Shown piece by piece: positions 20,070-41,629 of a stretch of 64,000 bases of DNA (position 1 is its first letter; the number at the start of each line of letters is the position of its first letter). The stretch is from assembly GCF_006345805.1 (NCBI RefSeq), contig NW_021836314.1, positions 1 through 64,000 on the forward strand, written 5' to 3'. This stretch comes from Octopus sinensis (lineage: Eukaryota). The notes under the pieces were generated by a model. The model was given only the letters and a program-made list of their open reading frames with translations, was not told the DNA's origin and ran no database searches. The position numbers and the translations under genes were made by a program.

Positions 20070-20156
20070 AAATAGATATATCATGAATAGAGTCCAGTAG
20101 TTGATTCGTCGATATATTAAGGAAATGCGAAAAAAATGTCATCGTTCAGAAGATAT
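20070..20156 (-). pseudogene. Degenerate LRR pseudo-exon
   Basis: Flank at 20158-20240 is homologous to the A-type acceptor flank, but the acceptor reads cttcat instead of cttcag. Residual YLLND...TGLYS..YL with stops. Confidence 0.5.
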
Positions 20157-20634
20157 ATGAAGCAGGAAGAAACGTTGCTTAGTTTCACATCGTATGTAAT
20201 TGCGAAGAAATATTGAATAATGTTCATTATGTGAAGAAAGAATTTATATGGAAATATAACGAATAAGGGAAGAAGAAGAACAAGAAGAAGAAGAAGAAGA
20301 AGAAATAGAAGAAGAAGAAGAAGAAGAAAAGAAGAAGGAGGAGGAGGAGGAGACGAAGAATAAGAAGAAGAAGAAGAAGAAGGAGAAAAGAAGAAGAATG
20401 AGGAGAAGGAGAAAAAGGAGGAGGAGAAGGAGAAAAAGAAGAAGAAGAAGAAGAAAAACAAGAAGAAGAAGAGGGGGATTTAGGAAGAAGAAGAAGAAGA
20501 AGAAGAAGAAGAAGAAAAGGAAATGAAGGAGAAGGAGAAGAAGAAGAAGAAGGAGAAGAAGAAGGAGAGGGATAATAATAATAATAATAATAAGAAGAAG
20601 AAGAAGAAGAGAAGAAGAAGAAGAAGAAGAAGAA

Positions 20635-20665
<31 letters not shown>

Positions 20666-21054
20666 AAGAAGAAGAAGAAGAAGAAGAACAAAAACTTCAA
20701 CAACAATAACAAAAAAATTATCTCGGTGGAATTGTGGATAAATAACCACACGGCACCACAGAATCAACAGAACAATGTGAAATAAAATAGTAGCTAAAAC
20801 TTATATTAATAGTGCAGATACAGACATACATATGAACATACACATATATTTTCAGGAATAACATTTTTATGCAGACAATTATCAACTGACAGTCATTGAC
20901 ATGTTCAGACTCAATCAAATAAATATAACACGAATATGAGAACTGAATATGATTTACAGTAATAGAGAGTGAGAAAACATGGAAATAAGGGGATATTAAA
21001 TTTAAAGACATAGTATATTCCTCATGTATAAACGACAACATTGAAAGAACTTAC

Positions 21055-21126
21055 AATTCCTCTAAGCTGTGAAGGCCTTGAAACATCTCCTTTTCAATCC
21101 TTGAAATTTTATTGTTGCCAAGGTTT
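21055..21126 (-). CDS. LRR cassette exon A1
   Basis: cttcag|...TT|gtaagt, 72 bp; NLGNNKISRIEKEMFQGLHSLEEL. Confidence 0.95.
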
Positions 21127-24032
21127 CTGAAGCAGGAAACAATATTGGTTAGATTGACATAGTGTGAATTGCGATAACATATTCAATATTGTTCTTTATG
21201 AAAAGGGAAAAAATATAGGAAAATAACACAAGAAGAAGAGGAACAGGAAAGAGATTGAGAAGAAGAAGAAGCCAAAGAAGAAGGGGAGGTGGGGAAGGGG
21301 AAACGGAGAAGACAAGGAGGAAGTGGAGGGGGAGAAGAAGTAGAAGAAGGAGGAGTTGGAGGAGGAGGAACGAAGGAGAGGAAAATGGCTGAGGACGGAG
21401 TAGGACAAGGAGATGAAGGAGGGGTGGGGGAAATAGGAGGAGGAGCAGAGGGTAGAGTAGAAGAAAAAGATGTAAATTATTAAAAAGAGGAGGAGGGTGA
21501 GGAGACGAAGAAGAATAGGCAAAAGAGAAGAAAAAGAAGAAGAAGAGGAAAAAGAAGAAGAAGAAGAAAGCGATGAAGAAGGAGGAGGAAGAGGAGAAGG
21601 AGGGAGAGAATTACAAAAAAGAAGATGAGAAAAAAAAGAAGAAGGAGGAGAAGGAGGAGAAGTAGAAGAAAGTAGAAGTAGGAGTGGAAGAAAAAGAGGA
21701 AGAAGAAAGAGGATAAGGAGGGGGAGGGGAAAGTAAGAATTACAAGAAGGAGGAGGAGGAGGAGAAGAAGAAGAAGAAGAAGAAGAAGAAGCAGAAGAAG
21801 AAAAAGGAGGAGGAGTAGAGGTAGAAGAAGAGGAAGAAGAACAGGAAGCTGTAGAAGAAAGAGAAGACGGAAGAAGAGGCAAGAGGTGGAGGAGGAGGAT
21901 GAAGGGGAAGAAGAAGTTAGAGAAAAGAAAAAAAGAAGAAGAAGGAGGAGGAGAATAACAAAATGAAACTATGAAGAAGAAAGAGCCGAAAGAGGAGAAG
22001 TAGATGAAGAAATAGAAAGTAGAATAAGAAGAAGTAGAGGAAAAAGAAAAATAAGGAGGAAGATGAGGAGGAGAAGTAGAAGAAGAAGAAGAAGAAGAAG
22101 AAGAAGAAGAAGAAGAAGGAGAAGAAGAAGAAGAAGAAGAAGAAGAAGAGGAGGAGGAGGAGGAGGAGAAGAAGAAGAAGTAGAAGTAGAAGAAGAAAGA
22201 AGAAGAAGAAGAAGAAAAGAAGACGAAGAACAAGAAGAAGGAAAAGGAGGAGGATGAAGGGGAAGAAGAAGAGAAAGGAGGAGGATGAGAAGAATATGAA
22301 GAAGTAGAAAGTGTAGAAGAGGTAGAAGACGAAGAAAAAAAGAAGTCGTAGAAAGAGAAGAAGAAAAGGAAAATGATGGAGGAAGACGGGGAACAGAAGT
22401 AGAAGAAGAAGACGAAGAAGGAGAAGAAGAAGGAGAATAAGAATTAGAAGAAGAAGAAGAAAAAGGAGCAAGAGAGGAGAGGGGTGGAGATGGACGAGAA
22501 TTACAAGAAGAAAAAGGAGGGGGTGGGGTGGTGAGAGGAGGAAGTGAATTACAAGAAGTAAATGTAGATGAAGAAGAAGAGAATAAAATTAGAAGAAGAA
22601 AAGAAAGAGGAGGAGGTGGAGGAGGAGAAGAAGAAGAATAGTTTAAAAGAAGGAGAAGAAGAAGAAATTGAAGAAGAGAAGAAAAAGAAGGAGGAGGATG
22701 ATGAGCAGGAGGTGAGGCGGAGGAAGGAGAAGACGAAGAAGAAGAAGAAGAAGAAGAAGAATAGTTTAAAAGAAGAAGGAGAAGAAGAAGAAAATGAAGA
22801 AGAAGAGAAGAAAGTAAGGATAGGAGGAGGCATGAGGTTGGCTAAGGAATAAGAAGAAGGAAGACTAAGACTAAGAATATAAGAAGAAGACGACGACGAC
22901 GAAGAAGAAGAATAAGAAGAAGAAGAGGAGGAAGAAGAAGAAGAATAGAAGAAGAAGAAGAAGAAGAAAAAGACGAAGACGAAGAAGAAGAAAGGAAGAA
23001 GAAGAAGGGGAGTAGAAGAAAAAGAAGAAGAAGAAGAAGAAAGAAGTTATATTGAAAATCATGGTGTTGAAGACGAAACTGAAATTGTTCTTAAAATATC
23101 AGGAAATAATTCAAGGATAGATCGATAAATTTTGGGCGAGAAGACATGGCTGAAAAATCATGGAATATACGGAATCAGAAATCAACATATTCAAATGCAC
23201 TCATACGCATTCTTATATTCATAGTATCAACGACGGAATGCGGTATGCACACTCACATCACACATATTCCCACTCACCCTTGTGGAAATATGGTGAGAGA
23301 GATTATTTCATATCGCTTCATTGTCAGAAGAATATTAGAAAACACACGCTTACAAGAAATATATCAGCAGTTTAATTGTATCAGGCCAAATATTCGAGCT
23401 TACAAGTACAGTATGTATTTCAGGTTTACAGATAGAATGTATGTGACTATATTATTCGAATATATATTTTCCGCTTCCAATTTAGTTGCTCTATTACATA
23501 AATAACGTGAAGTGAATGACAAAATTCGAAGTTGAATGATAATATCGAAACATGAAGGAGAATATTGAAATAGGAAATGGAGGAGGATGTAAAATATAAA
23601 ATAAAGGAATAATATATTCACATTTCACACAGAACTACACTTATATATGAACATACACAAATACTTCAGCTAAAAATATTTGATGCAAACATGTAAACTC
23701 ACAAACGTTACCATTTCTAATACAAATTCATATCAAAATCATTGAAATTGGGGAACAAAATGAGTTATTTAGATGCGAATTGAAACGAAGCAAGTACAAG
23801 AAAGGAACATTATATTTTTCCTATTATTTCACATTTTCTCTCAAATTCTCTCTCTTTCTTTCACATTGTCTCGCTCTCTCATATTCTTTTTGTATATTCC
23901 TAAATCGTGTTGATTCTACAAATTCGAATTGATTTTGTTTGGTGGAGTCTGAAATTTTATACATTTGTGAGCTTATATATCAGCATCAATTATTACATTC
24001 GGAAAATAATATCAAGAAACTGAAGAACTTAC

Positions 24033-24104
24033 AATTCTTTTAAATTGCAAAGCCCCGTGAATACACCTTCTTTGATGGTTGCAATGTTGTTGGAACCAAT
24101 ATTT
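24033..24104 (-). CDS. LRR cassette exon B1
   Basis: ctatag|...TT|gtaagt, 72 bp; NIGSNNIATIKEGVFTGLCNLKEL. Confidence 0.95.
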
Positions 24105-25348
24105 CTATAGCAGTAAAGAAAGAGTAAAATAGATTATATGGAAAATATTTGTGATACGACATCAAACACTGTGACTTCAGAATGAAAGGAAGAAAAAGAA
24201 GAAATATAACGAAGAAGAAAAAGAAGAAGAAGGAGAAGAAGAAGAAAAGAAGAAGAAGAAGAAGGTAGATGAAGAGAAGAAGAAGAATAAAAAGAAGAAT
24301 AAGGAGGAGGAAAAGGAGAAGAAGAAGAAGAAGAAGAAGTAGAAGAAAACGTAGAAGAAGAAAGGAGAAGATAAAGGAGAAGAAGACCTAGAAGAAGAAA
24401 AAGAAGAAGAGGAGGCGGAGGAGGCGGAGGAGGCGGAGGAGGCGGAGGAGGCGGAGGAGTCGGAGGTGGAGGAGAGGTGGGGATGTTAGGAGGAGGACAA
24501 AGGAATGGATGACTGAGGAGGGGCAGCTGGGGATAGCAGCAGAAGGAGCAGGAAGAGCAGGAGGATGAGTATAAGAGGAAGAATTGGAAGAGAATGGAAA
24601 AGAGGGAGACCATTGAAGAAGCAGAAAGTACAGAGAAGAAAAAGAACAAGAAAAAAAGAAGGCAAAGAAGAAGACAAAGAAGAAGTAGAACAGGAAGAAA
24701 AGTAACAAGAAGAAGAAGAAGATGAAGTAGAAGAAGAATAAGAGGAAGAAGAAGAAGAAGAAGACGACGAAGAAGAAGAGGAACATGCAGGAGATGAAGA
24801 AGGAAAGAAGAAGACGAAGAAGATGAAGAAGAAAAATAGAAGAAGAGAAAGAAGAAATTAAAGAAAAAGGAGGATGAGTAGGACGAAGAGGGGAGGTTGA
24901 GGAGAAGAATTGCAATAAGAAGAAGAAGAAAAAGGAGAAGGAGGTGGAGGAGGAGGGGGAATAGGAGAATTACAAGAAGAAGAACAAAACAACAACAATA
25001 ACAAAAAAATTATCTCGGTGGAAGTGTGGATAAATAACCACACGGCACCACAGAATCAACAGAACAATGTGAAATAAAATAGTAGCTAAAACTTATATTA
25101 ATAGTGCAGATACATACATACATATGAACATACACATATATATTTTCAGGAATAACATTTTTATGCAGACAATTATCAACTGACAGTCATTGACATGTTC
25201 AGACTCAATCAAATAAATATAAGACGAATATGAGAACTGAATATGATTTACAGTAATAGAGAGTGAGAAAACATGGAAATAAGGGGATATTAAATTTAAA
25301 GACATAGTATATTCCTCATGTATAAACGACAACATTGAATGAACTTAC

Positions 25349-25420
25349 AATATCTCTAAGTTGTGAAGGCCTTGAAACATCTCTTTTTCAATCCTTGAAA
25401 TTTTATTGAAGGAAAGAGAT
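25349..25420 (-). CDS. LRR cassette exon A2
   Basis: cttcag|...TT|gtaagt, 72 bp; SLSFNKISRIEKEMFQGLHNLEIL. Confidence 0.95.
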
Positions 25421-26454
25421 CTGAAGCAGGAAACAATATTGGTTAGATTGACATAGTGTGAGTTGCGATAACATATTCAATATTGTTCTTTATGAAGAGG
25501 GACAAAATTATAGGAAAATAATACAAGAAGGGGAACAGGAAAGAGATTGAGGAGAAGAAGAAGACAAAGACGAAGGGGAGGAGCGGAAGGGGAAACGGAG
25601 AAGACGAGGAGGAAAAGGAGGGGGGGAGAAGAAATAGGAGGAGTTCGAGGAGGAGGTGGGGAGGAGAAGAAAAAGCTTGAGGTCGGAAGAGGACAAGGAG
25701 ATGCAGGAGGGGTGGGGGAAATAGGAGGAGGAGCAGAGGGTAGAGTAGAAGAAAAAGATGTAAATTATTAAAAAGAGGAGGAGGAGGATGAGGAGACGAA
25801 GAAGAATAGGTAAAAGAAAAAGAAGAAGAAGAGGAAAAAGAAAAAGAAGTAGAAGAAGGCGATGAAGAAGGAAGAGGAAGAGGAGAAGGAGGGAGAGAAT
25901 TACAAAAAAGAAGATGAGGATAAAAAGAACGAGAAGGAGAAGGAGGAGAAGTAGAAGAAAGTAGAAGTGGGTTAGGAAGAAAAAGAAGAAGAAGAAGAAG
26001 GAGAAGTAGAAGAAGAATAAATGAAGTAGAAGAAAGAGAAGTTGAAGAAAAAGAAAAATAAATAGGAAGATGAGGAGGAGAAGTAGAAGAAGAACAACAA
26101 CAACAATAACAAAAAATTTATCCTGGTGGAAGTGTGGATAAATAACCACACGGCACCACAGAATCAACAGAACAATGTGTAAGAAAATAGTAGCTAAAAC
26201 TTGTATTAATAGTGCAGATACATACATACATATGAACATACACATATATTTTCAGGAATAACATTTTGATGCAGACAATTATCAACTGACAGTCATTGAC
26301 ATTTTCAGACTCAATCAAATAAATATAAGACGAATATGAGAACTGAATATGATTTACAGTAATAGAGAGTGAGAAAACATGGAAATAAGGGGATATTAAA
26401 TTTAAAGACATAGTATATTCCTCATGTATAAACGACAACATTGAAAGAACTTAC

Positions 26455-26526
26455 AATTTCTCTAAGTTGTGAAGGCCTTGAAACATCTCTTTTTCAATCC
26501 TTGAAATCTTATTGTTGCGAAGACCT
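26455..26526 (-). CDS. LRR cassette exon A3
   Basis: cttcag|...TT|gtaagt, 72 bp; GLRNNKISRIEKEMFQGLHNLEKL. Confidence 0.95.
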
Positions 26527-29153
26527 CTGAAGCAGGAAACAATATTGGTTAGACTGACATAGTGTGAATTGCGATAACATATTCAATATTGTTCTTTATG
26601 AAAAAGAACAAAATTATAGGAAAATAATATGAGAGGAAGAGGAACAGGAAAGAGATTGAGGAGAAGAAGAAGCCAAAGAAGAAGGGGAGGAGGGGAAGGG
26701 GAAACGGGGAAGACAAGGAGGAAGTGGAGGGGGAAAAGAAGTAGAAGAAGGAGGAGTTGGAGGAGAAGGAACGAAGGGGAGGAAAAAGGCTGAGGACGGA
26801 GTAGAACAAGGAGATGCAGGAGGGGTGAGGGAAATAGGAGGAGGAGCAGAGGGTAGAGTAGAAGAAAAATATGTAAATTATTAAAAAGAGGAGGAGGGTG
26901 AGGAGACGAAGAAGAATAGGTAAAAGAGAAGAAAAAGGAAAAGAAGAGGAAAAAGAAGAAGCAGAAGAAGGCGATGAAGAAGGAGGAGGAAGAGGAGAAG
27001 GAGGGGGAGAATTACAAAAAAGAAGATGAGAAGAAGAAGAAAGAGGATGAGAAGGAGAAGTAGAAGAAAGTAGAAGAAAGAGGATAAGGAGGGGGAGGGG
27101 AAAGGAAGAATTACAAGATGAGGAGAAGAAGAAGAAGAAGCAGAAGAAGAAAAGGAGGAGTAGAGGTAGAAGAAGAAGAAGAAGAACAGGAAGCAGTAGA
27201 AGAAAGAGAAGAAGAAGGAAGAGGGGGCAAGAGGTGGAGGAGGAGGATGAAGGGGAAGAAGAAGTTAGAGAAAAAGAAAAAAAGAAGAAGGAGGAGGAGA
27301 ATAACAAAATGAAAATATGAAGAAGAAAGAGCCGAAAGAGGAGAAGTAGACGAAGAAATAGAAAGTAGAATAAGAAGTAGAAGAAAATGAAATAGAAGAA
27401 AGAGAAGTTGAAGAAAAAGAAAAATAAGGAGGAAGATGAGGAGAAGTACAAGAAGAAGAAGAAGAAGAAGAAGAAGGAGGAGGAGGAGGAAGAGACGTAG
27501 AAGCAGAAGTAGAAAAAGAAGAAAAAGAAGAAGAAAAAAGAAGACGAATAAGAAGAAGGAAGAGGAGGAGGATGAAGGCGAAGAAGAAGAGAAAGGAGGA
27601 GGAGGAGAAGAATATGAAGAAGTATAAAGTGTAGAAGAAGTAGAAGACGAAAAAAAAAGAAGTGGTAGAAAGAGAAGAAGAAAAGGAAAAAGATGGAGGA
27701 AGACGGGGAACAGAAGTAGAAGAAGAAGACGAAGAAGGAGAAGAACAAGGAGAATAAGAATAAGAATTAGAAGAAGAAGAAGAAAAAGGAGCAAGAGAGG
27801 AGAGGGGTGGAGGTGGACGAGAATTACAAGAAGAAAAAGGAGGGGTGGGGTGGTGAGAGGAGGAAGTGAATTACAAGAAGTAAATGTAGATGAAGAAGAA
27901 GAGAATAAAATTAGAAGAAGAAAAGAAAGAGGAGGAGGTGGAGGAGGAGAAGAAGAAGAATAGTTTAAAAGAAGGAGAAGAAGAAGAAATTGAAGAAGAG
28001 AAGAAAAAGAAGGAGGAGGATGATGAGCAGGAGGTGAGGCGGAGGAAGGAGAAGAAGACGAAGAAGAAGAAGAAGAAGAAGAAGAAGAAGACGACGACGA
28101 CGAAGAAGAAGTAAAAGAAGAAGGAGAAGAAGAAAAGAAGAAGAAGAAGAAGAAGAAAGAAGAAGAAGAAGAAGAAGAAGATACATTAAAAATCATTGTC
28201 TTCAAGACGACCCTTAAAATGTTTTCATAATATCAGGAAATAATTCAAGGATAGAATGAAAAATTTTGGGCGAGAAGACATGGCTGAAAAATCATGGAAT
28301 ATACGGAATCAGAAATCAACATATTCAAATGCACTCATACGCATTCTTATATTCACAGTATCAACGACGGAATGCGCTCTGCACACTCACATCACACATA
28401 TTCCCACTCACCCTTGCGGAAATATGGTGAGAGAGATTATTTATTTAATATCGCTTCATTGTCACAAGAATATTAGAAAACACACGCTTACAAGAAATAT
28501 ATCAGCAGTTTAATTGTATCAAGCCAAGTATTCCAGCTTATAAGTACAGTAAGTATTTCAGGTTTACAGATAGATGTATGTGACTATATTATTCGAATAT
28601 ATATTTTCCGCTTCCAATTCAGTTGCTCTATTACATAAATAACGTGAAGTGAATGACAAAATTCGAAGTTGAATGATAATATCGAAACACGAAGGAGAAT
28701 ATTGAAATAAGAAATGGAGGAGGATGTAAAATATAAAATAAAGGAATAATATAGTCACATTTCACACAGAACTACACTTATATATGAACATACACATATA
28801 CTTCAGCTAAAAATGTAACCTCACAAACGTTACCATTTCTAATACAAATTCATATCAAAACCTTTGAAATTTGGGGAACAAAAAAGAGTTAATGAGATGC
28901 GAATTGAAACAAAGCAACTACAAGAAAGGAACATTATATTTTTCCTATTATTTCACTTTCTCTCTCAAATTCTCTCTCTTTCTTTCACATTGTCTCGCTC
29001 TCTCATATTCTCTTTGTATCTTCCTAAATCGTGTTCATTCTTCAAATTCGAATTGATTTTGTTTGGTGCAGTCTGAAATATTATATATTTGTGAGCTTAT
29101 ATATCAGCATCATTACTTTCGGAAAATAATATCAAGAAATTGAACAAACTTAC

Positions 29154-29225
29154 AATGTCTTTAAATTCGAAAGGCCCGTGAATAAACCTTCTTTGATGGT
29201 TGAAATGTTGTTCCATCTCAGATCT
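29154..29225 (-). CDS. LRR cassette exon B2
   Basis: ctatag|...TT|gtaagt, 72 bp; DLRWNNISTIKEGLFTGLSNLKTL. Confidence 0.95.
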
Positions 29226-30390
29226 CTATAGCAGTAAAGAAAGAGTAAAATAGATTATATGGAAAATATATGTGATACGACACCAAACACTGTGATTTCA
29301 GAATGAAAGGAAGAAAAAGAAGAAAGATAACGAAGAAAAAGAAGAAGTAGACGGAGGAGGAGGAGAAGAAGTAGAAGAAGAAGATGAGTAGAAGAAGAAA
29401 GTAGAAGAAGGAGAATTGGGCAGGAGGTGGAGGGGGCGGAAGAGAAGGTGTAGTGGGGAGGTTAGGAGGAGGACCAAGGAATGGATGACTGAGGAGCGGC
29501 AGCTGGGGGTAGAAGCAGAAGGAGCAGGAAGAGCATGAGAATGAGAATAAGAGGAAGAATTGGCAGAGAATGGAAAAGAGGGAGACAAGTGACGGAGCAG
29601 AAAGTACAGAGAAGAAAAAGAAGAAGAAAAAAAGAAGAAGAAGAAGAAGAAGAAGAAGAAGAAGAAAAATAGAAGAAGAATACAAATAAGTAGAAAAATA
29701 AGAAGAAAAAAAGAAGGCAAAGAAGAAGACAAAAAAGAAGTAGAACACGAAGAAAAGTAACAAGAAGAAGAAGTAGATGAAGTAGAAGAAGAAGAAGACG
29801 ACGAAGAAGAAGAGGAACATGTAGGAGATGAAGAGGGAAAGAAGAAGACGAAGAAGATGAAAAAAAAGAAAAATAGAAGAAGAGAAAGAAGAAATTGAAG
29901 AAAGAGTAGGATGAGTAGGACGAAGAGGGGAGGTTGAGGAGGAGAATTGCAATAAGAAGAAGAAAAAGGAGGAGAAGGAGGTGGAGCAGGAGGGAGAATA
30001 GGAGAATTACAAGAAGAAGAACAAAACAACAACAACAACAATAAAAAAAATTTATTTCGGTGGAAGTGTGGATAAATAACCACACGGCACCACAGAATCA
30101 AGAGAACAATGTGTAAGAAAATAGTAGCTAAAACTTATATTAATAGTGCAGATACATACATACATATGAACATACACATATATATTTGCAGGAATTACAT
30201 TTTTATGCAGACAATTATCAACTGACAGTCATTGACATGTTCAGACTCAATCAAATAAATATAAGACGAATATGAGAACTGAATATGATTTACAGTAATA
30301 GAGAGTGAGAAAACATGGAAATAAGGGGATATTAAATTTAAAGACATAGTATATTCCTCATGTATAAACGACAACATTGAATGAACTTAC

Positions 30391-30462
30391 AATTTCTCTA
30401 AGTTGTGAAGGCCTTGAAACATCTCCTTTTCAATCCTTGAAATTTTATTGCTGTCAAGAGAT
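30391..30462 (-). CDS. LRR cassette exon A4
   Basis: cttcag|...TT|gtaagt, 72 bp; SLDSNKISRIEKEMFQGLHNLEKL. Confidence 0.95.
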
Positions 30463-31284
30463 CTGAAGCAGGAAACAATATTGCTTAGATTGACATAGTG
30501 TGAATTGCGATAACATATTCAATATTGTTCTTTATGAAAAGGGACAAAATTATAGGAAAATAATACAAGAGGAACAGGAAAGAGATTGAGGAGAAGAAGA
30601 AGACGAAGAAGGGGATGAGGGGAAGCGGAAAAGAAGAAGACTAGGAGGAAAAGGAGGGGGAGTAGAAGTAGAAGAAGGAAGAGTTGGAGGAGGAGGAGGG
30701 GAGAAGAAGAAGAAGGAGGAGGACTGAAGAGGACAAGGAGATGAAGGAGAGAAAGGAACATAGGAGGAGGATGGGCAGAGGAAAAGAAGACAAAGAAGAA
30801 GAGGAGGAGGGGAAGGGGAAAATAAGAAGACAAGGAGGAAGAGGAGTTGGGAGAAGAAGTAGAAGGAGGAGGAGGAGAAGGATGAGTAGGAGGAGTAGGC
30901 GGAGATGAGGAGAAGTAGGTTGAGGACGGGGGAGGACAATGAGATGCAGGAGGGGGAATAGGAGGAGGAGGAGGAATGGGAGGAGTAGAAGAAGAAGATG
31001 TAGAAGATTAAAAAGAGGAGGAAGAAAAAGAAGATATAGAAGAATGAAGGGGATGGAGAGGAGAAGAATAATAAGAAGAAGAAGCAGGAAAAAGAAGAGG
31101 AAGAAGAAGTAGATGAAGAAGAAGAAGAAGAAGAAAAAGAAGAAGGAGAAGGAAATGGAGGAAAAGAGATGGATGACGAAGAAGGGGAAGGAGAAGAAGG
31201 AGAAGAAGAAGAAGAACAACAACAACAACAAGAATAAGAAGAAGAAGTAGGAGGAAGAGGAGGAGAATAACAAAATGAAGAAGA

Positions 31285-31315
<31 letters not shown>

Positions 31316-32456
31316 AAGGAGGAGGAGGAAAAGTAGAAGAAGAAAAGAACAAAAAGAAGAAGAAGGAGAAGAAGAAGACGACGACGACGAAGAAGAAGTA
31401 GAAGAAGAAGAAGGAGAAGAAGAAGAAGAAGAAGTAAAAGAAGAAGAAGAAGAAGAAGAAGAAGAAGAAGAAGATACGTTGAAAATCATGGTGTTCAAGA
31501 CGAAACTGAAAATGTTGTCATAATATCAGGAAATAATTCAAGGATAGAGCGGTAAATTTTGGGCGAGAAGACATGGCTGAAAAATCAGGGAATATACGGA
31601 ATCAGAAATCAACATATTCAAACGCACTCATTCGCATTCTTATAGTCATAGTATCAACGACGGAATGCGCTATGCACACTTACATCACTCATAATCCCAC
31701 TCACACTTGTGGAAATATGGTGAGAGAGATTATTTATTTCATATCGCTTCATTGTCAGAAGAATATTAGAAAACACACGCTTACAAGAAATATATCAGCA
31801 GTTTAATTGTATCAGGCCAAATATTCCAGCTTACAAGTACAGAAAGTATTTCAGGTTTACAGATAGAATGTATGTGACTATATTATTCGAATATATTTTC
31901 CGCTTCCACTTCAGTTACATAAATAACGTGAAGTGAATGACAAAATTCGAAGTTGAATGATAATATCGAAACACGAAGGAGAATATTGAAATAAGAAATG
32001 GAGGAGGATGTAAAATATAAAATAAAGGAATAATATAGTCACATTTCACACAGAACTACACTTATATATGAACATACACATATACTTCAGCTAAAAGTAT
32101 TTGATGCAAACATGTAAACTCACAAACGTTACCATTTCTAATACAAATTCATATCAAAACCTTTGAAATTTGGGGAACAAAAATGAGTTATTGAGATGCA
32201 AATTGAAACAAAGCAACTACAATAAAGGAACATTGTATTTTTCCTATTATTTCACTTTCTCTCTCAAATTCTCTCTCTTTCTTTCACATTGTCTCGCTCT
32301 CTCATATTCTTTTTGTATCTTCCTAAATCGTATTCATTCTACAAATTCGAATTGATTTTGTTTGGTGCAGTCTGAAAGTTTATACATTTGTGAGCTTATA
32401 TGTCAGCATCAATTATAACTTTCGGAAAATAGTATCAAGAAATTAAACGAACTTAC

Positions 32457-32528
32457 AATTCTTTTAAATTTGAAAGCCCCGTGAATGTACCTTCTTTGAT
32501 GGTTGAAATGTTGTTCTCGTACAGATCT
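32457..32528 (-). CDS. LRR cassette exon B3
   Basis: ctatag|...TT|gtaagt, 72 bp; DLYENNISTIKEGTFTGLSNLKEL. Confidence 0.95.
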
Positions 32529-33830
32529 CTATAGCAGTAAAGAAAGAGTAAAATAGATTATATGGAAAATATTTGTGATTCGATATCAAACACTGTGACT
32601 TCAGAATGAAAGGAAGAAAAAGAAGAAAGATAACGAAGAAGAAGAAGAAGAAGAAGAAGAAGAAGAAGAAGAAGAAGAAGATTAAAACAGGAAAAGAAGA
32701 AGAAGAAGAAAGGAAAAGAAGAAGAAAAAGAAAGAAAAAGGAGAAGAAGAAGCAGTAGTAGAAGAAAAAGAAAAGTAGAAGAAGGGGAATTAGGGACGAG
32801 GTGGAGGATGTGGGGGTGGAGCAGAGGTGGGGAGGTTAGGAGGAGGACAAAGGAAGGGATGCCTGTTCAGGGGGCCGCTGAGGGTAGCAGCTGAAGGAGC
32901 AGGAAGAGCTGGAGACTGAGAATAAGAGGGAGAATTGGCAGAGAATGGAAAAGAGGGAGACCAGTGACGGAGCATAAAGTACAGAGAAGAAAAAGAAGAA
33001 GAAGAAGACAAAGAAGAAGAAGAAGAACAAAATTAGAAGAGGAAGAAGGAGGAGGAGAAGAAGTAGAAGAAGAAGCAGAAGAAGAAGAAAACAAAGAAAA
33101 TTAAGAAGAAGAAGAAAAAAGAAGGCAAAGAAGAAGTAGAACACGAAGAAAAGTAACAAGAAGAAGAATAAGTAGAAGAAGAAGAAGAGGAAGAAGAAGA
33201 AGACAAAGAAAAGAAGAAGAAGAAGAAGAGGAAGAAGAAGAAGACGACGAAGAAAAGGAACATGAAGGAGATGGAGAAGGAAAGAAGAAGACGAAGAAGA
33301 TGAAGAAGAAGAAAAATAGAAGAAGAGGAAAAAGAAATTGAAGAAAAAGGAGGATGAGTAGGACGAAGAGGGCATGTTGAGGAGGAGAATTGCAATAAGA
33401 AGAAGAAAATGAGGAGAAGGAGGTGGAGGAGGAGGGGGAATAGGAGAATTACAAGAAGAAGAACAAAACAACAACAACAACAACAAAAATATTATCTCGG
33501 TGGAAGTGTGGATAAATAACCACACGGCACCACAGAATCAAGAGAACAATGTGTAAGAAAATAGTAGCTAAAACTTATATTAATAGTGCAGATACAGACA
33601 TACATATGAACATACACATATATATTTTCAGGAATAACATTTTTATGCAGACAATTATCAACTGACAGTCATTGACATGTTCAGACTCAATCAAATAAAT
33701 ATAAGACGAATATGAGAACTGAATATGATTTACAGTAATAGAGAGTGAGAAAACATGGAAATAAGGGGATATTAAATTTAAAGACATAGTATATTCCTCA
33801 TGTATAAACGACAACATTGAAAGAACTTAC

Positions 33831-33902
33831 AATTCCTCTAAGCTGTGAAGGCCTTGAAACATCTCCTTTTCAATCCTTGAAATTTTATTGTAGGAAAGAT
33901 CT
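33831..33902 (-). CDS. LRR cassette exon A5
   Basis: cttcag|...TT|gtaagt, 72 bp; DLSYNKISRIEKEMFQGLHSLEEL. Confidence 0.95.
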
Positions 33903-35555
33903 CTGAAGCAGGAAACAATATTGGTTAGATTAACATAGTGTGAATTGCGATAACATATTCAATATTGTTCTTTATGAAGAGGGACAAAATTATAGGAAAA
34001 TAATACAAGAAGAAGGGGAACAGGAAAGAGATTAAGGAGAAGATGAAGAAGAAGAAAGAGAGGAGGGGAAGGGGAAAAGAAGAAGTCAAGGAGGAAGAGT
34101 AGGGGGGAGAAGAAGTAGAAGAAGGAGGAGTTGGAGGAGGAGGAGGAGGAGGGGAGGTGAAGTAGGATGAGGACAGGGAAGGACAAGGAGATGCAGGAGG
34201 GGGAGGAAAATAGGAGGAGGTGCAGAGGGTAGAGTATAAGAAGATATAGAAGATTAAAAGTGGAGGAAGAAAAAGAAGTAGAAGGAAGAGGAGGGTGAAA
34301 AGAAGAAAAAGAAGAAGAAGAAAAAGAAGAAGTAAAACGAGAAGAAGAAGCGGAAAATGAAGAAGAAGTAGAAGCAGGAAAAAAGGAGAAGAAGGAAGAA
34401 GAGAAAAATAGGTGGAGGCGGAGGTGGAAGAGGAAGGGGAAGAAGAAGAAGACAGATGAGAAGGAGGAGGAGGAGGAGGAGGAGGAAGGGGAAGTAGAAG
34501 AAAAAGAAGGAGGAGAAGGAGGAGGAGGAAGAGTAGTAGAAGAAGAAGAATAAGATGAAGAAGAAGAAGATGACACTTTGAATATCATGGTATTCAAGAT
34601 GAATCTGGAAATGTTCTCAAGATATCAGGAAATAATTCAAGGATAGATCGAGAAATTTTGGGCGAGAAGACATGGCTGAAAACTCAGGGAATATACGAAA
34701 TCAGAAATCAACATATTCAAATGCACTCATACGCATTTTTATTTTCATAGTATCAACAACGGAATGCGGTATGCACACTCACATCACACATAATCCCACT
34801 CACACTTGTGGAAATATGGTGAGAGAGATTATTTATTTCATATCGCTTCATTGTCACAAGAATATTAGAAAACACACGCTTACAAGAAATATATCAGCAG
34901 TTTAATTGTATCAGGCCAAATATTCCAGCTTACAAGTACAGAAAGTATTTCAGGTTTACAGATAGAATGTATGTGACTATATTATTCGAATATATATTTT
35001 CCGCTTCCACTTCAGTTACATAAATAACGTGAAGTGAATGACAAAATTCGAAGTTGAATGATAATATCGAAACACGAAGGAGAATATTGAAATAAGAAAT
35101 GGAGGAGGATGTAAAATATAAAATAAAGGAATAATATAGTCACATTTCACACAGAACTACACTTATATATGAACATACACATATACTTCAGCTAAATGTA
35201 TTTGATGCAAACATGTAAACTCACAAACGTTACCATTTCTAATACAAATTCATATCAAAATCATTGGAATTTGGGGGAAAAATGAGTTATTGAGATGCGA
35301 ATTGAAACAAAGCAACTACAATAAAGGAACATTATATTTTTCCTATTATTTCACTTTCTCCCCCAAATTCTCTCTCTTTCTTTCACATTGTCTCGCTTTC
35401 TCCTATTCTCTTTGTATCTTCTTAAATCTTGTTCATTCTACAAATTTGAATTGATTTTGTTTAGTTCAGTCTGAAATTTTATACATTTGTGAGCTTATAT
35501 ATCAGCATCAATTAATACTTTCGGATAATAGTATCAAGAAATTAAACGAACTTAC

Positions 35556-35627
35556 ACTGTTTTTAAATTGGAAAGCCCCGTGAATACACCTTCTTTGATG
35601 GTTGAAATGTTGTTCCCGAAAAGATAT
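35556..35627 (-). CDS. LRR cassette exon B4
   Basis: ctatag|...GT|gtaagt, 72 bp; YLFGNNISTIKEGVFTGLSNLKTV. Confidence 0.95.
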
Positions 35628-37610
35628 CTATAGCAGTAAAGAAAGAGTAAAATAGATTATATGGAAAATATTTGTGATACGACATCAAACACTGTGACAT
35701 CTGAATGAAAGGAAGAAAAAGAAGAAAGATAACGAAGAAGAAAAGGAAGAAGAAGGAGGAGGAGGAGGCGAAGAGGAAGAAAAGTAGAAGAAGAAGAATT
35801 AGTAGAAGAAGAAAGGAGAAGAGGTAGTAGAAGAAAAAGAAGCGAAAGAAGGAATACCTGGAAAAAGGAGGAGGAGGATGATAAAAGGGAAGAAGAAGTA
35901 GAAGAAAAAGTAAAAGAAGAAGAAGAAGGGGATGGGAGGAAAAGAATAACAAGAAGAAGAAGATAAATATAAGAAAGACGAGGAGGAGGAGGAGGAGAAG
36001 TAGGTGAAGAAGTAGAAATAAGAAGAAGAAGAAGGAGAAGAAGAACAACAACAAGTCGAAATAGAAGGAGGATGAGGAGGGGGAGGGGAAGAAGAAATAT
36101 TGCAAGAAGAAGGAAGGAAAGAACAGGAAGAAGAAGATGTAGAAGTAGTAGAAGCAAGAAAAAGAAGAAAGATAACGAAGAAGAAAAGGAAGAAGAAGGA
36201 GGAGGAGGAGGAGGCGAAGAGGAAGAAAAGTAGAAGAAGAAGAATTAGTAGAAGAAGAAAGGAGAAGAGGTAGTAGAAGAAAAAGAAGCGAAAGAAGGAA
36301 TACCTGGAAAAAGGAGGAGGAGGATGATAAAAGGGAAGAAGAAGTAGAAGAAAAAGTAAAAGAAGAAGAAGAAGGGGATGGGAGGAAAAGAATAACAAGA
36401 AGAAGAAGATAAATATAAGAAAGACGAGGAGGAGGAGGAGGAGAAGTAGATGAAGAAGTAGAAATAAGAAGAAGAAGAAGGAGAAGAAGAACAACAACAA
36501 GTCGAAATAGAAGGAGGATGAGGAGGGGGAGGGGAAGAAGAAATATTGCAAGAAGAAGGAAGGAAAGAACAGGAAGAAGAAGATGTAGAAGTAGTAGAAG
36601 CAAGAAAAAGAAGAAGAAGATGAAGGAGGTGGAGGAGAAGGAGATAGAGAATAACAAAAACAGAAGTGAAGAAGAAGAAGGAGGAGGAGGAGGAGTAGAA
36701 GAAGAAGTAGAAAGAAGAAGAGGAAGAAAAAAAGAAAAAGACAAAGAAGAAGAAGAAGGAAGGGGAGGAAAAAGGAGGAGGAGGAGTGTGAAGGAGGAGA
36801 ATAAGTAGGAGAACATGAAAAAGAAGAAGAAGATGAAGGAGGAGGAGGTTGAGAATAACAAAAAGAAGAATATAAGAAGAAGAAAGAGGAGTAGGAGGAG
36901 AAGTAGATGAAGAAGTAGAAAGTAGTGGTAGAAGAAGACATAGAAGAAGAAGAAAAAAGAAGTAGAAGAATGAGAAGAAGAAATGAAAAAGAAGAAGGAA
37001 GGAACAGAAGAAGAAGAATTAGAAGAAGAAGCAGAAGAAGAAGAAAAAGTTGCAGGAGAGGAGGGGAGGAGGAGAATAACAAGAAGAAAAAGGAGGAGGC
37101 GCGGAGAGGATTGGGTAGAAAAAAAGTAGAGGAAAAAAGAAGTAGAAGAAGGAAGAGGAAAAAGGAGGAGGAAGGAGATGAAAGGGAAAAAGTAGGGGTA
37201 GAAGAAAAAGAAGAAGAAGAAGAACAAGGAGGAGGAGGAGGAGGAGGAGTAGATGAAGAAGTTGAAAGTAGAAGAGGAAGAAGTGGAAGAAGAAGAAAAA
37301 AGGAGAAGCGAGAGAAGAAGAAGAAGAAAAAGAAGAAGAAGAAGGAGGAGAAGAAGGTGCAGCAGGAGGAGAGGAACAGAAGGAAGAAGAAGAAAAAGAA
37401 GAAGAAGAAGAAGAAGAAGAAGAAGAACAAAGGAGAAGAAGGAGCAGCAGGAGGAGAGGAAGAGAAGGAAGAAGAAGAAAAAGAAGAAGAAGAAGAAGGA
37501 AAATAAGAAGAAGAAGAAGGAAAAGAAGAAGAAGAAGGCAGAATACGAAATGACAAAAAGATGAAGAAGAAGGCGGAAAAGGAGAAATAGAATAAGAAAA
37601 AGAACAAAAA

Positions 37611-37642
<32 letters not shown>

Positions 37643-38847
37643 AAAATATAAAGCGGGAGAAGAAGAAGAAGAAGAAGAACAACAACAACAACAAAAAGAA
37701 GAAAAAGAGGAAGAAGAAGAAGAAGAAGTGGAAAAAGAAAAAGATAAAGAGGGAGAAGAAGAAGAACAACAGAAGAAGAAAAAGATAAAGAGGGAGAAGA
37801 AGAAGAAGAAGAAGGAGAAGAAAAAGAAGAAGAAAAAGAAGAAGAAGAAGAAGAAGAAGAAGATGACAATTTAAAAATGATGGTGTTCATGATGAAACTG
37901 AAAATGTTCTCATAATATCAGGAAATAATTCAAGGATAGAGCGATAAATTTTGGGCGAGAAGACATGGCTGAAAAATCAGGGAATATACGGAATCAGAAA
38001 TCAACATATTCAAATGCACTCATACGCAATCTTATATTCATAGTATCAACGACGGAATGCGGTATGCACACTTACATCACACATATTCCCACTCACCTTT
38101 GTGGAAACATGGTGAGAGAGATTATTTATTTCATATCGCTTCATTGTCACAAGAATATTAGAAAACACACGCTTACAAGAAATATATCAGCAGTTTAATT
38201 TATCAGGCCAAATATTCCAGCTTACAAGTACAGTAAGTATTTCAGGTTTACAGATAGAATGTATGTGACTATATTATTCGAATATATATTTTCCGCTTCC
38301 ACTTCAGTTACATAAATAACGTGAAGTGAATGACAAAATTCGAAGTTGAATGATAATATCGAAACACGAAGGAGAATATTGAAATAAGAAATGGAGGAGG
38401 ATGTAAAATATAAAATAAAGGAATAATATAGTCACATTTCACACAGAACTACACTTATATATGAACATACACATATACTTCAGGTAAAAATATTTGATGC
38501 AAACATGTAAACTCACAAACGTTACCATTTCTAATACAAATTCATATCAAAATCATTGAAATTTGGGAACAAAAATGAGTTATTGAGATGCGAATTGAAA
38601 CAAAGCAACTACAATAAAGGAACATTATATTTTTCCTATTATTTCACTTTCTCTCTTAAATTCTCTCTCTTTTTTCACATTGTCTCGCTCTCTCCTATTC
38701 TCTTTGTATCTTCCTAAATCGTATTCATTTTACAAATTTGAATTGATTTTGTTCGGTGTAGTCTGAAATATTATACATTTGTGAGCTTATATATCAGCAT
38801 CAATTATTACGTTCGGAAAATAATATCAAGAAACTGAACGAACTTAC

Positions 38848-38919
38848 AATTCTTTTAAATGTGAAAGCCCCGTGAATGCTCCTTCTTTGATGGTTGCAAT
38901 GTTGTTGTTCCACAGTTCT
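38848..38919 (-). CDS. LRR cassette exon B5
   Basis: ctatag|...TT|gtaagt, 72 bp; ELWNNNIATIKEGAFTGLSHLKEL. Confidence 0.95.
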
Positions 38920-39758
38920 CTATAGCAGTAAAGAAAGAGTAAATTAGATTATATGGAAAAAATATGTGATACGACATCAAACACAGTGACATCTGAATGA
39001 AAGGAAGAAAAAGAAGAAAGATAACGAAGAAGAAGAAGAAGAAGAAGAAGAAGGGAAGAAGAAGAAGAAGAAGGAGAAGAAGAAGAAGAAGAAGAAGAAG
39101 AAGAAGAAGAGGAAGTAAAAGAAGACGAAGACAAAGAAAAGGAAGAAGAAGAAGAAGAAGAGGAAATAGAAGAAGACGACAAAGAAGACGGAACATGAAG
39201 GAGATGAAGAAGGAAAGAAGAAGAGGAAGTATAAAAAGAAGAAAAAGAAGAAGAGAAAGAAGAAATTGAAGAAAAAGGAGGATGAGTAGGACGAAGAGGG
39301 GAGGTTGAGGAGGAGAATTGCAATAAGAAGAAGAAAATTAGGAGAAGGAGGTGGACGAGGAGGGGGAATAGGAGAATTACAAGAAGAAGAACAAAAACAA
39401 CAACAACAACAACAAAAATATTATCTCGGTGGAAGTGTGGATAAATAACCACACGGAACCTCAGAATCAACAGAACAATGTGTAAGAAAATAGTAGCTAA
39501 AACTTATATTAATAGTGCAGATACAGACATACATATGAACATACACATATATATTTTCAGGAATAACATTTTTATGCAGACAATTATCAACTGACAGTCA
39601 TTGACATTTCAGACTCAATCAAATAAATATAAGACGAATATGAGAACTGAATATGATTTACAGTAATAGAGAGTGAGAAAACATGGAAATAAGGGGATAT
39701 TAAATTTAAAGACATAGTATATTCCTCATGTATAAACGACAACATTGAAAGAACTTAC

Positions 39759-39830
39759 AATTTCTCTAAGCTGTGAAGGCCTTGAAACATCTCTTTTTCA
39801 ATCCTTGAAATTTTATTGTAGCCAAGATCT
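39759..39830 (-). CDS. LRR cassette exon A6
   Basis: cttcag|...TT|gtaagt, 72 bp, phase 2-2; DLGYNKISRIEKEMFQGLHSLEKL. Confidence 0.95.
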
Positions 39831-41557
39831 CTGAAGCAGGAAACAATATTGGTTAGATTAACATAGTGTGAATTGCGATAACATATTCAATATTGTTCTT
39901 TATGGAAGGAGACAAAATTATAGGAAAATATACAGAAGAAGAGGAACGAAAGAGATTAAGGAGAAGAAGAAGAAGAAGAAGAAGAAGAAGAAGAAGAAGA
40001 AGAAAGAGAGGAGGGGAGGGAAAAGAAGAAGTCAAGGAGGAAGAGAAGGGGGGAGAAGAAGTAGAAGAAGGAGGAGTTGGAGGAGGAGGGGAGGTGAAGA
40101 AGGATGAGGACAGGGAAGGAAAGGAGATGCAGGAGGGGGAGGAAGGGAGGAAAATAGGAGGAGGTGCAGAGGATAGAGTATAAGAAGATATAGAAGATTA
40201 AAAAGTGGAGGAAGAATAAGATGAAGTAGAAGGGAGAAGAAAGGGGAGGAGGAGAAGAAGAGAAGAGGAAGAAGAGAGGAGAAGAAGAAGAAGGAGAGAA
40301 GAGAAAGAAGAAGTAAAAGGAGAAGAAGAGCGGAAGAAAATGAAGAAGAAGAAGAAGCATGAAAAAAGAAGGAGAAAAAGAAAAAGAAGGAGAAGAAGGA
40401 AGAAGAGGAAAATAGGTGGAGGCGGAGGAGTAGGAGGAAGCGGAAGGAGAAGAAGAGGACAAAGGAGAAGGAGGAGGAAGAGAAGTAGGAGAAGAAGAAG
40501 AAGAAGAAGAAGAAGAAGAAGAAGAAGAAGAAGAAGAAGAAGAAGAAAAGAAGAAGAAGAAGATGACACTTTGAATATCATGGTGTTGAAGACGAAACTG
40601 AAATTGTTCTTAAAATATCAGGAAATAATTCAAGGATAGATCGATAAATTTTGGGCGAGAAGACATGGCTGAAAAATCAGGGAATATACGGAATCAGAAA
40701 TCAACATATTCAAATGCACTCATACGCATTCTGATATTCATAGTATCAACGACGGAATGCGGTATGAACACTCACATCACACATATTCCCAATCACACTT
40801 GTGGAAATATGGTGAGAGAGATTATTTATTTCATATCGCTTCATTGTCACAAAAATATTAGAAAACACACGCTTACAAGAAATATATCAGCAGTTTAATT
40901 GTATCAGGCCAAATATTCCAGCTTACATGTACAGTAAGTATTTCAGGTTTACAGATAGAATGTATGTGACTATATTATTCGAATATATATTTCCCGCTTC
41001 CAATTCAGTTGCTCTATTACATAAATAACATGAAGTGAATGATAAAATTCGAAGTTGAATGATAATATCGAAACACGAAGGAGAATATTGAAATAAGAAA
41101 TGGAGGAGGATGCAAAATATAAATAAAGGAATAATATAGTCACATTTCACACAGAACTACACTTATATATGAACATACACATATACTTCAGCTAAAAATA
41201 TTTGATGCAAACATGTAAACTCACAAACGTTACCATTTCTAATACAAATTCATATCAAAATCATTGAAATTTGGGGAACAAAACTGAGTTATTGAGATGC
41301 GAATTGAAACAAAGCAACTACAATAAAGGAACATTATATTTTTCCTATTATTTCACTTTCTCCCCCAAATTCTCTCTCTTTCTTTCACATTGTCTCGCTC
41401 TCTCCTATTCTCTTTGTATCTTCCTAAATCTTGTTCATTCTACAAATTTGAATTGATTTTGTTTGGTTCAGTCTGAAATTTTATACATTTGTGAGCTTAT
41501 ATATCAGCATCAATTAATACTTTTGGATAATAGTATCAAGAAATTAAACGAACTTAC

Positions 41558-41629
41558 ACTTTTTTTTAAATTGGAAAGCCCCGTGAATACACCTTCTTTG
41601 ATGGTTGAATGTTGTTCTCGGAAAGATAT
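41558..41629 (-). CDS. LRR cassette exon B6 (72 bp; compensating -1/+1 homopolymer indels give an in-frame TAA as assembled)
   Basis: ctatag|A...GT|gtaagt; restores to YLSENNISTIKEGVFTGLSNLKKV by comparison with the five sister B exons. Confidence 0.85.

Follow-up and report, generated by a model that had tools for sequence, protein, structure and literature searches.

The minus strand of a 64-kb stretch of the Octopus sinensis genome (RefSeq assembly GCF_006345805.1, contig NW_021836314.1, positions 1 to 64,000; hereafter, the window) carries a whole gene for a leucine-rich repeat (LRR) protein, which tblastn with XP_036355613.1 resolved into exon 1, an array of single-LRR exons (cassettes), an exon for a putative C-terminal LRR cap (LRRCT) and a Cys-rich tail. 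The array (41629-21055, minus strand) contains 12 cassettes of two types, A and B, with six of each. We read it, with a probability of about 0.7, as a young, recombining set of exons under diversifying selection on the binding face of the protein, for which combinatorial splicing is predicted. This reading is drawn mainly from an 11-nucleotide (nt) patch in every cassette that encodes LRR positions 5-8 and differs from cassette to cassette within otherwise closely similar repeat units, from the rates of amino acid-changing substitution at the residues concerned, and from the predicted isoforms of the gene.

The cassette array and its hypervariable patch

All 12 cassettes are 72 nt long and have AG/GTAAGT splice sites with phase-2 introns on both sides; 11 were recovered by a scan for AG-72 nt-GT with an LRR-like translation and the twelfth was read directly. 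A exons are preceded by ...ctgcttcag and B exons by ...ctgctatag, and both types are followed by gtaagtt. The first base of each cassette closes a Leu or Val codon opened by the final two bases of the preceding exon and every array intron is therefore in phase 2, each cassette coding for LRR positions 5-24 and then 1-3 (numbering L1xxL4xL6xxN9xI11...). The cassettes follow one another in the transcript as B A B B A B A B A A B A, with no strict alternation of the two types.

A six-frame motif search assigned every peptide string quoted in a first-pass annotation, which had been made from the letters of the window alone, to the minus strand. The six A patches (in transcript order DLGY, DLSY, SLDS, GLRN, SLSF and NLGN, each followed by the invariant NKISRIEKEMFQGLH) and the six B patches (YLSE, ELWN, YLFG, DLYE, DLRW and NIGS) were all present. 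The motif given there as x-L-x-x-N corresponds to LRR positions 5-9, and the residue two before it, which was also reported to vary, is position 3 and does so (E/K/I in A exons and E/K/T in B exons). The reported retention of C at the third codon position was found at codons 3 and 4 of all six A exons, where 1 of 12 changes in the variable codons fell at a third position (P = 0.054), but not in the B exons, where third positions do change.

When each exon type was aligned with 600 nt of flank per side, pairwise diversity in exon nt 2-12 (LRR positions 5-8) was 0.41 for A and 0.52 for B, compared with 0.02 and 0.07 in exon nt 13-57 and 0.04 and 0.06 in the introns (100 nt upstream plus 400 nt downstream). 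Minimum changes per site amounted to 1.09 (A) and 1.55 (B) in the patch and to 0.10 and 0.15 over ~480 flanking intron sites (Poisson P = 4e-9 and 3e-12), and the clustering of change in the patch is far beyond chance. The first-pass annotation had described the rest of each exon as homogenised around the variable codons; the remainder of the exon is indeed alike (mean pairwise divergence of 4.0% in A and 10% in B), as are the flanks (5.4-5.5%), but it is the whole unit that is similar and the patch (41-52%) that forms the outlier.

The canonical solvent-exposed strand positions of an LRR are 2, 3, 5, 7 and 8, and these were set as test sites a priori from canonical LRR geometry and not picked from the present data. 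Per-codon changes were counted on a minimum spanning tree, with exon-wide synonymous sites and intron cores as the neutral proxies. On this count, 13 of the 14 nonsynonymous changes in A exons (P = 3e-8) and ~17 of 24 in B exons (P = 1e-6) lay on the five concave positions. Nonsynonymous changes per nonsynonymous site were 1.05 (A) and 1.38 (B) at the concave codons and 0.02 and 0.17 at the remaining 18 codons, and synonymous changes per synonymous site across the whole exon were 0.24 and 0.49. The concave nonsynonymous rate stood at 4.3 times the exon-wide synonymous rate in A (P = 0.011) and 2.8 times in B (P = 0.007), and at ~10 times (A, P = 5e-9) and ~9 times (B, P = 1e-11) the intron rate; at the non-concave codons the ratio was 0.1-0.4, and these other 18 codons are under purifying selection. 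Nei-Gojobori pairwise estimates gave a proportion of nonsynonymous differences (pN) of 0.51/0.61 (A/B) at the variable codons versus a proportion of synonymous differences (pS) of 0.09/0.18 elsewhere.

Diversifying selection on a binding surface had been proposed in the first-pass annotation, and the sequence comparisons favour it, since the concave nonsynonymous rates are above both the exon-wide synonymous rate and that of the intron cores (~9-10-fold, P<=5e-9). The proposed location agrees with an AlphaFold model of the product, an LRR solenoid with a predicted local distance difference test score (pLDDT) of ~90 across the LRR domain, in which a strand recurs every 24 residues at LRR positions 3-5(6). 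Positions 3 and 5 fall within the concave sheet of the model and positions 7 and 8 just beyond it, as in canonical LRR geometry, by which the variable sites would be neither convex nor buried.

Patch divergence among the B units climbs with flank divergence (rho = 0.64, P = 0.01), and the youngest pairs already differ at 2 of 11 patch sites (A1-A2, with a flank divergence of 0.017, and B1-B3, with 0.034), an excess of ~5-10-fold. Repeated amino acid replacement after duplication is therefore favoured over purely ancient patches.

The window has a G+C content of ~36%, and its + strand shows a strong purine excess at ~20-42 kb (GC skew 0.4-0.8, AT skew 0.35-0.78) because of long degenerate (GAA)n tracts. 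These (GAA/AGA)n tracts of 0.4-2 kb lie between unique blocks in most array introns and at both array ends, in the introns that precede B1 and follow A6 (19582-20688, 21503-23046, 26904-28181, 30987-31474, 35712-37863 and 41808-42228), and, being purine-rich on the + strand, they are transcribed as pyrimidine-rich tracts. At 35709-36615, a 446-bp unit occurs twice, with 98% identity. Array-specific blocks of ~435 nt behind each A exon and ~980 nt behind each B exon are 92-95% alike and present in exactly six copies each, with none elsewhere in the window; they were rejected as dispersed transposons, the copies being inside the array alone. The first-pass statement that introns 21127-24032 and 26527-29153 are near-identical, yet join exons that differ, was borne out: the introns share 94.3% identity in ungapped columns over 2.6 kb and the same GAA-derived open reading frame (ORF) string, and B5 differs from B6 at 6 of 11 patch sites and A4 from A6 at 4 of 11. 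The repeat units (an exon with ~0.5-1 kb of intron), ~5% diverged, appear from these alignments to reflect recent duplication and/or continuing unequal exchange and gene conversion.

The reverse complement of the window is colinear with contig VCDQ01004985.1 across 52.7 kb, with 0.33% mismatches (99.7% substitution identity), and the two contigs share the same 12 cassettes, patches and order, of which the first three are also found in a further contig, L003. The only dense cluster of differences between window and VCDQ01004985.1 outside microsatellite sequence lies at A2 (window 33831-33908, VCDQ01004985.1 18869-18945), where 10 mismatches occur in 75 nt, nine of them exonic and one in the polypyrimidine tract. 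The cassette reads DLSYNKIS...HSLEE in the window, where it has the array-consensus framework, and SLSYNYIS...HNLER in VCDQ01004985.1, with two of the changes synonymous, and the surroundings are identical between the contigs for 230 nt downstream and 60 nt upstream. This stretch looks like a short gene-conversion tract when the contigs are aligned, with mis-polishing of repeats as the alternative. The first exon of the Cys-rich domain differs between the same contigs by four clustered substitutions and a 2-nt length difference that brings a TGA into frame in the window; the window version resembles paralogue P0138, and the P0002 group (third contig) also stops at ...CNE. No exact donor for the A2 patch of VCDQ01004985.1 or for the Cys-rich-exon patch of the window was found in the window, VCDQ01004985.1, L003, the paralogous locus on VCDQ01000433.1 (L002) or the O. 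vulgaris locus on OX597843.1 (L004). Cassette B1 is intact in L003 (72 nt, 14068-14139), has 73 nt in VCDQ01004985.1 (11131-11203) and combines the loss of one T with the gain of one A in the window, the contigs differing in T-run and A-run length only; these states are likely long-read assembly error and possibly real polymorphism.

The RefSeq gene on VCDQ01004985.1 has 13 predicted isoforms of 409, 385, 361 or 337 residues, in steps of 24 residues, and three more are predicted for the gene on a third contig (76.7 kb). Exon 1 and the cassettes are 100% identical to O. sinensis XP_ proteins, and all 16 isoforms decompose into subsets of the array's cassettes: B5, A4 and A5 are always used, B4 and A3 nearly always, and B1, A1, B2, B3 and A2 optionally, and every model splices A5 to the LRRCT exon over 11.6 kb. 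Under NCBI pipeline practice, such isoform variants presumably reflect RNA-seq support. Because the cassettes are 72 nt long, with phase-2 introns and identical strong splice sites, any subset joins in frame, and twelve optional cassettes would allow up to ~4,000 in-frame combinations per locus. Chimeric B modules occur in six models (X2, X4, X7, X8 and X13 of the VCDQ01004985.1 gene and X3 of the gene on the 76.7-kb contig). Five of them join after ...IKEG, where all B exons carry AAG/GT, so that a canonical GT...AG 'intron' can be drawn between the interiors of two B exons; that of X8 joins further along the exon, and no GT donor was found at its junction. Cryptic splicing, reverse-transcriptase template switching or a bypass by the predictor of the 73-nt B1 in VCDQ01004985.1 may lie behind these modules.

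Selection, drift, splicing control and assembly as explanations

The patch (positions 5-8) and the position-3 codon have changed about ten times faster, with nearly all changes altering the amino acid. Diversifying selection on solvent-exposed concave residues would keep the surface strips of the cassettes distinct as unequal exchange and conversion kept the scaffold and the splice signals uniform. The scaffold would then be constant, and the strip of binding surface would change from cassette to cassette. As a matter of speculation, the purine/pyrimidine tracts between units might favour exchange, as proposed for Sp185/333 (PMC3091723), and the CU-rich tracts of the transcript might bind splicing repressors. 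Inclusion and skipping of cassettes is predicted to give proteins with 5-8 or more LRRs in varied combinations, and the spliced cassettes would yield secreted proteins with different surfaces.

Several points weigh against this reading. Changes were counted in 12 related cassettes by a parsimony shortcut in place of a likelihood site model. When only the ~2.5 synonymous sites within the variable codons are used, the ratio of nonsynonymous to synonymous rates (dN/dS) comes to 1.3-2.7 and, with so few sites, is not significant. The first-pass statement that variation is confined to concave codons held for the most part in the A exons, which also vary at position 24, but not in the B exons, where positions 6, 12, 18 (V/A/T/L), 23 and 24 vary as well. 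Neither B6 nor A6 is used in any isoform model; these models are Gnomon predictions in a region where RNA reads map ambiguously among near-identical exons, and the chimeric B modules of some models may be artefacts. The window copy, with its frameshifted B1 and premature C-terminal stop, may be a defective allele or contain assembly errors. In the B exons, whose local synonymous sites are themselves fast, some of the patch divergence might be ancient sequence missed by homogenisation. Homogenisation or constraint may also have acted on the intron cores, in which case the ratio would be too high and the introns no clean clock.

Some of these concerns are shared by an account without positive selection, in which relaxed constraint is combined with concerted evolution: the x positions drift, conversion erases differences in the rest of the unit, and the diverged patch blocks heteroduplex extension, persisting as an island. 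The local synonymous sites of the B variable codons are fast too (1.10 changes per site, against 1.38 for nonsynonymous sites), exon synonymous sites have changed 2-3 times faster than introns, which suggests that the introns are homogenised and supply no neutral clock, and a conversion-like tract between two contigs was observed directly. We nevertheless regard this account as unlikely. Drift cannot pass the neutral rate, and the concave nonsynonymous rate is 2.8-4.3 times the exon-wide synonymous rate (P ~0.01) and ~10 times that of the introns; conversion that homogenises 60 nt on each side of an 11-nt patch should often take in the patch itself; the codon for Leu-6, in the middle of the patch, is conserved; and in the A exons the third codon positions of the patch are fixed and positions 1-2 change. 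The same restriction of A-exon changes to codon positions 1-2 bears on the suggestion that the variable exon ends serve splicing control, with the first 12 and last 5 nt tuning inclusion as enhancers or silencers. Variation at both exon ends, adjoining otherwise identical splice sites, and the unequal predicted use of the cassettes (constitutive, optional and two never used) would suit that suggestion, but the variation respects the codon and LRR pattern, leaving Leu-6, Asn-9 and Leu-1/Leu-4 untouched in or beside the variable stretches, and the variable positions are the canonical ligand-contact positions of LRRs, and we hold it to be quite improbable.

Even less credence is given to an assembly artefact, whereby collapse or short-read polishing, in a long-read assembly of repetitive sequence, would have made the flanks alike and produced the frameshifts and the 'allelic' patch. 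B1 does differ among three contigs by homopolymer length alone, among the contigs of GCA_006345805.1 several unplaced ones carry the locus and two of these break off within the array, and the consensus framework of the window A2 is what mis-polishing would give. Against this, cassettes, patches and order agree between the window and VCDQ01004985.1, and for the first three in L003, the flanks keep ~5% unit-specific differences that are reproduced between contigs, and the same cassette sequences occur in RefSeq transcript-based models.

Diversifying selection on the concave face could be carried further, to an RNA-level repertoire of octopus LRR proteins in which stochastic or regulated inclusion of cassettes would give each cell or state a distinct concave surface, an extension that we consider doubtful; hybrid modules formed at the ...IKEG/GT junction within B exons might add to such a repertoire.

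Gene structure and product

The exons and array introns of the gene are listed in Table 1. The dead terminal LRR exon has the same sequence in the window and in VCDQ01004985.1, and none of the isoforms includes it. Remnants of additional C-terminal exons known from longer paralogues lie out of frame at 5649-5572, 4609-4508 and 1105-948 on the minus strand. The O. sinensis gene seems to derive by truncation from such a longer architecture.

Table 1. Positions in the window of the exons, exon relics and array introns of the LRR gene, in transcript order with the introns last.
Feature	Position	Strand	Basis and remarks
Exon 1 coding sequence, putative signal peptide and LRRNT cap (MFHH...PTNVEY), phase-2 end TT/GTAAGT	45502..45692	-	tblastn, 100% to XP_036355613.1 residues 1-64; splice sites checked
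Cassette B1 (YLSE), 72 nt	41558..41629	-	direct reading; TTT>TT deletion and 1-nt insertion in A-run give in-frame TAA
Cassette A1 (DLGY NKISRIEKEMFQGLHSLEK)	39759..39830	-	exon scan, isoform decomposition; used in RefSeq isoforms X1, X9 and X12
Cassette B2 (ELWN NNIATIKEGAFTGLSHLKE)	38848..38919	-	exon scan, isoform decomposition
Cassette B3 (YLFG NNISTIKEGVFTGLSNLKT)	35556..35627	-	exon scan, isoform decomposition
Cassette A2 (DLSY...HSLEE)	33831..33902	-	exon scan; comparison with VCDQ01004985.1
Cassette B4 (DLYE)	32457..32528	-	exon scan, isoform decomposition
Cassette A3 (SLDS)	30391..30462	-	exon scan, isoform decomposition
Cassette B5 (DLRW)	29154..29225	-	exon scan, isoform decomposition; in every predicted isoform
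Cassette A4 (GLRN)	26455..26526	-	exon scan, isoform decomposition; in every predicted isoform
Cassette A5 (SLSF)	25349..25420	-	exon scan, isoform decomposition; in every predicted isoform, joined straight to LRRCT exon
Cassette B6 (NIGS)	24033..24104	-	exon scan, isoform decomposition; intact, canonical splice sites, in 0/16 predicted isoforms
Cassette A6 (NLGN)	21055..21126	-	exon scan, isoform decomposition; intact, perfect splice sites, in 0/16 predicted isoforms
Dead terminal LRR exon (YLNSNPIEKYEDGA...)	16902..16971	-	70 nt, not 72; frameshift and stop; intact in paralogues P0138 and P0149
Putative LRRCT cap exon ((F)YLENNNLMKCGCHLPAF...DYSQCQ)	13584..13741	-	tblastn, splice sites checked
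Cys-rich Ly6/uPAR-like domain, first exon (...CSGIICNE*)	8814..8903	-	tblastn; 90 nt, 92 in VCDQ01004985.1; in-frame TGA
Cys-rich domain, second exon (PVCRF...CTGCCVGHLCNRMISL)	6670..6852	-	tblastn, splice sites checked
Final coding exon of RefSeq-type model (AGPNPSYFV*)	5651..5680	-	tblastn, splice sites checked
Out-of-frame C-terminal exon relics (FKKFNEYKIPAENISRA 5649-5596, MEHDLSTVTGTFRVEDCG 4609-4556, SNRNKIFAIYCTVF...FIDES 1105-948)	948..5649	-	tblastn with P0138 and P0154
Array introns with unique blocks and (GAA)n-like tracts	19582..42228		alignment within window

The product matches Pfam LRR_8 (E=1e-100) through tandem 24-residue LxxLxLxxNxI...F..L repeats, and the closest folds to the model, which include PDB sequence matches too, are LGR4, LINGO-1, the Nogo receptor, hagfish VLR-A29, NGL and LRRTM2. 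The caps are putative assignments from cysteine motifs, CxxCxCx9C in exon 1 and CxCx(n)Cx(n)C in the 13741-13584 exon; the Pfam match to LRRNT reaches only E=0.005, below the cut-off, and LRRCT is not reported by Pfam. A signal peptide is suggested by the sequence and by a helix at residues 2-26 of the model. The B exons encode an N-glycosylation sequon (N-I-S) at LRR positions 10-12 that is lost in B2 and B6, which read N-I-A; the S/A variation at position 12 would therefore toggle a glycan beside the concave face.

Ly6/uPAR domains are of ~80-90 residues, with 8-12 Cys, an N-terminal LxCxxC, a C-terminal CCxxxxCN and a three-finger fold. The Cys-rich tail has the LxCxxC...CCxxxxCN signature (LQCQTC...CCVGHLCN) with 12 conserved Cys, and one relative is named 'ly6/PLAUR domain-containing protein 1-like' by NCBI, supporting a putative Ly6/uPAR-like assignment at the level of the motif. 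No significant Pfam match was obtained for this domain (UPAR_LY6_2 at just E=0.14 in 1 of 15 members), and its AlphaFold pLDDT was <50, both within XP_036355613.1 and when modelled alone on its own family alignment, leaving the fold unconfirmed.

RefSeq names the gene 'slit homolog 1-like'. Slit proteins have four LRR domains followed by EGF repeats, laminin-G and a C-terminal cystine knot (CTCK); the octopus products, of 337-409 residues, have a single LRR domain, only LRR families in Pfam and none of the EGF, laminin-G or CTCK domains. Orthology to Slit was rejected on these grounds, and, given that the Slit domain content is absent, the name is a similarity label only. Most probably, the product is secreted and serves in recognition, in an immune or a chemosensory/adhesive role.

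Paralogues, comparable systems and other elements of the window

Relatives of the gene were found in Octopus species only, several of them running past the Cys-rich domain into further modules, and there are at least three paralogous loci. The concatenated cassettes matched O. sinensis database proteins at 79-81% identity over partial alignments, the other matches being generic LRR proteins. The paralogue on VCDQ01000433.1 (16245-18927) is ~6% diverged in the exon-1 region and has wholly different patches (YLRN, GLGD and DLSG), and another paralogous locus (P0064 group) has four isoforms, each containing four of five other cassettes (TLTW, SLFK, NLGR, SLFE and YLGS). The O. vulgaris locus on OX597843.1 (14549-15377) holds one A-like exon, one B-like exon and one terminal LRR exon, with patches YLEN and DLDS; its cassette flanks are 76-80% identical and its framework is more diverged. 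With just one A-like and one B-like cassette it was rejected as an orthologous array and is a paralogue, and because of this content the ancestral state was probably A-B-C, from which A and B would have been amplified to twelve here and C lost.

The VLRs of lamprey and hagfish resemble the predicted octopus protein in their LRRNT-(24-residue LRR)n-LRRCT organisation, variable number of modules and concave-strand diversity, and hagfish VLR-A29 was a top structural match with a template modelling (TM) score of 0.80 on target. VLR modules are spliceless cassettes that are copied into an incomplete gene by somatic gene conversion linked to cytidine deaminases, whereas in the octopus, which belongs to another lineage, the germline gene is complete and its modules are ordinary exons that RNA splicing is predicted to join. 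A VLR-type germline configuration was rejected, since the gene is complete, every module has AG...GTAAGT and the modules lie in transcript order.

In arthropod Dscam-hv genes, tandem duplicated exons likewise supply alternative recognition surfaces through splicing, but these exons encode immunoglobulin half-domains and are used in a mutually exclusive manner, one per cluster, whereas the octopus LRR cassettes are included or skipped additively in the predicted isoforms. The LRRs of plant R genes and Cf genes are repeats evolving in concert with hypervariable, positively selected surface positions. Fungal NLR repeats (HET-E/D type WD40/ANK/TPR) are near-identical tandem repeats that also evolve in concert, with few surface sites hypervariable and positively selected (PMC4986451). 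Both the fungal and the plant repeats differ from the octopus cassettes in lying within a single exon or ORF and being reshuffled at the DNA level, with no choice of exons in splicing. The sea urchin Sp185/333 (SpTrf) system has diversified units beside purine-rich microsatellites that are proposed to drive recombination (PMC3091723), but the units are whole genes and not exons, and the protein is unrelated.

The closest gene design is that of the brown-algal LRR-ROCO genes (Ectocarpus, Saccharina; Zambounis et al. 2012), whose LRRs are each encoded by a 72-bp phase-2 exon; these exons are described as duplicated, shuffled and alternatively spliced, and positive selection is reported at four concave sites (PMC11378527). 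The octopus gene shares the 72-nt phase-2 exons, their duplication, the isoforms (computationally predicted) and the rate excess on the concave face. LRR-ROCO proteins are, however, intracellular ROC-COR GTPases of stramenopiles, whereas the octopus protein has a Cys-rich tail and appears to be secreted and to have LRRNT/LRRCT caps, the ROC-COR GTPase core being absent from all octopus products in Pfam searches; the octopus array also differs in having two exon types and near-identical introns. Slit, LGR and glycoprotein-hormone-receptor genes likewise devote one exon to each LRR, with introns in phase 2 (PMC11378527). Slit and LGR proteins have LRRNT/LRRCT caps like those predicted for the octopus protein, of which LGR4/5 are top sequence and structure matches, but the genes are conserved as single-copy orthologues whose introns have diverged, and they lack a hypervariable patch.

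Already known, then, are the 72-bp phase-2 design, concerted evolution combined with hypervariable sites and the one-LRR-per-exon layout; new are the setting (several paralogous loci of a cephalopod that encode a probably secreted LRR protein with putative caps and a Cys-rich tail) and the contrast of the patch with its ~95% identical surroundings. The locus joins three hallmarks of diversified recognition: a concerted tandem array, hypervariable residues on the ligand face and frame-neutral modules that splicing can combine. We know of no diversified immune or recognition receptor system in cephalopods, which have complex, long-lived bodies. This gene family was not described in the literature searched, and the cephalopod entry of a 2026 review of immune diversification across animals concerns haematopoiesis only. 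If the isoforms are real and their ligands differ, the gene would be an animal case of the brown-algal design and an RNA-level functional analogue of the VLRs; were the RNA-level repertoire true, it would be a splicing counterpart to VLR assembly in an animal thought to be restricted to germline-fixed innate receptors. On a conservative reading, the locus would still provide a clean natural case of an 11-nt patch staying diverse amid homogenising sequence.

Outside the gene, a short ORF at 48890-49228 (+) has putative mariner/Tc1-transposase-like motifs (...YSPDLSP...) and gave no match in a Pfam search. Two inverted ORFs, at 54530-55453 (-) and 55434-56129 (+), have near-identical C-terminal regions of ~225 residues and match a GIY-YIG nuclease weakly (E=0.002, below the cut-off); the pair is possibly the remnant of a Penelope-like element. 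Upstream of the gene, at 62137-63129 and 61473-62071 on the minus strand, is a retrotransposon reverse transcriptase fragment (Pfam RVT_1, E=9e-22).

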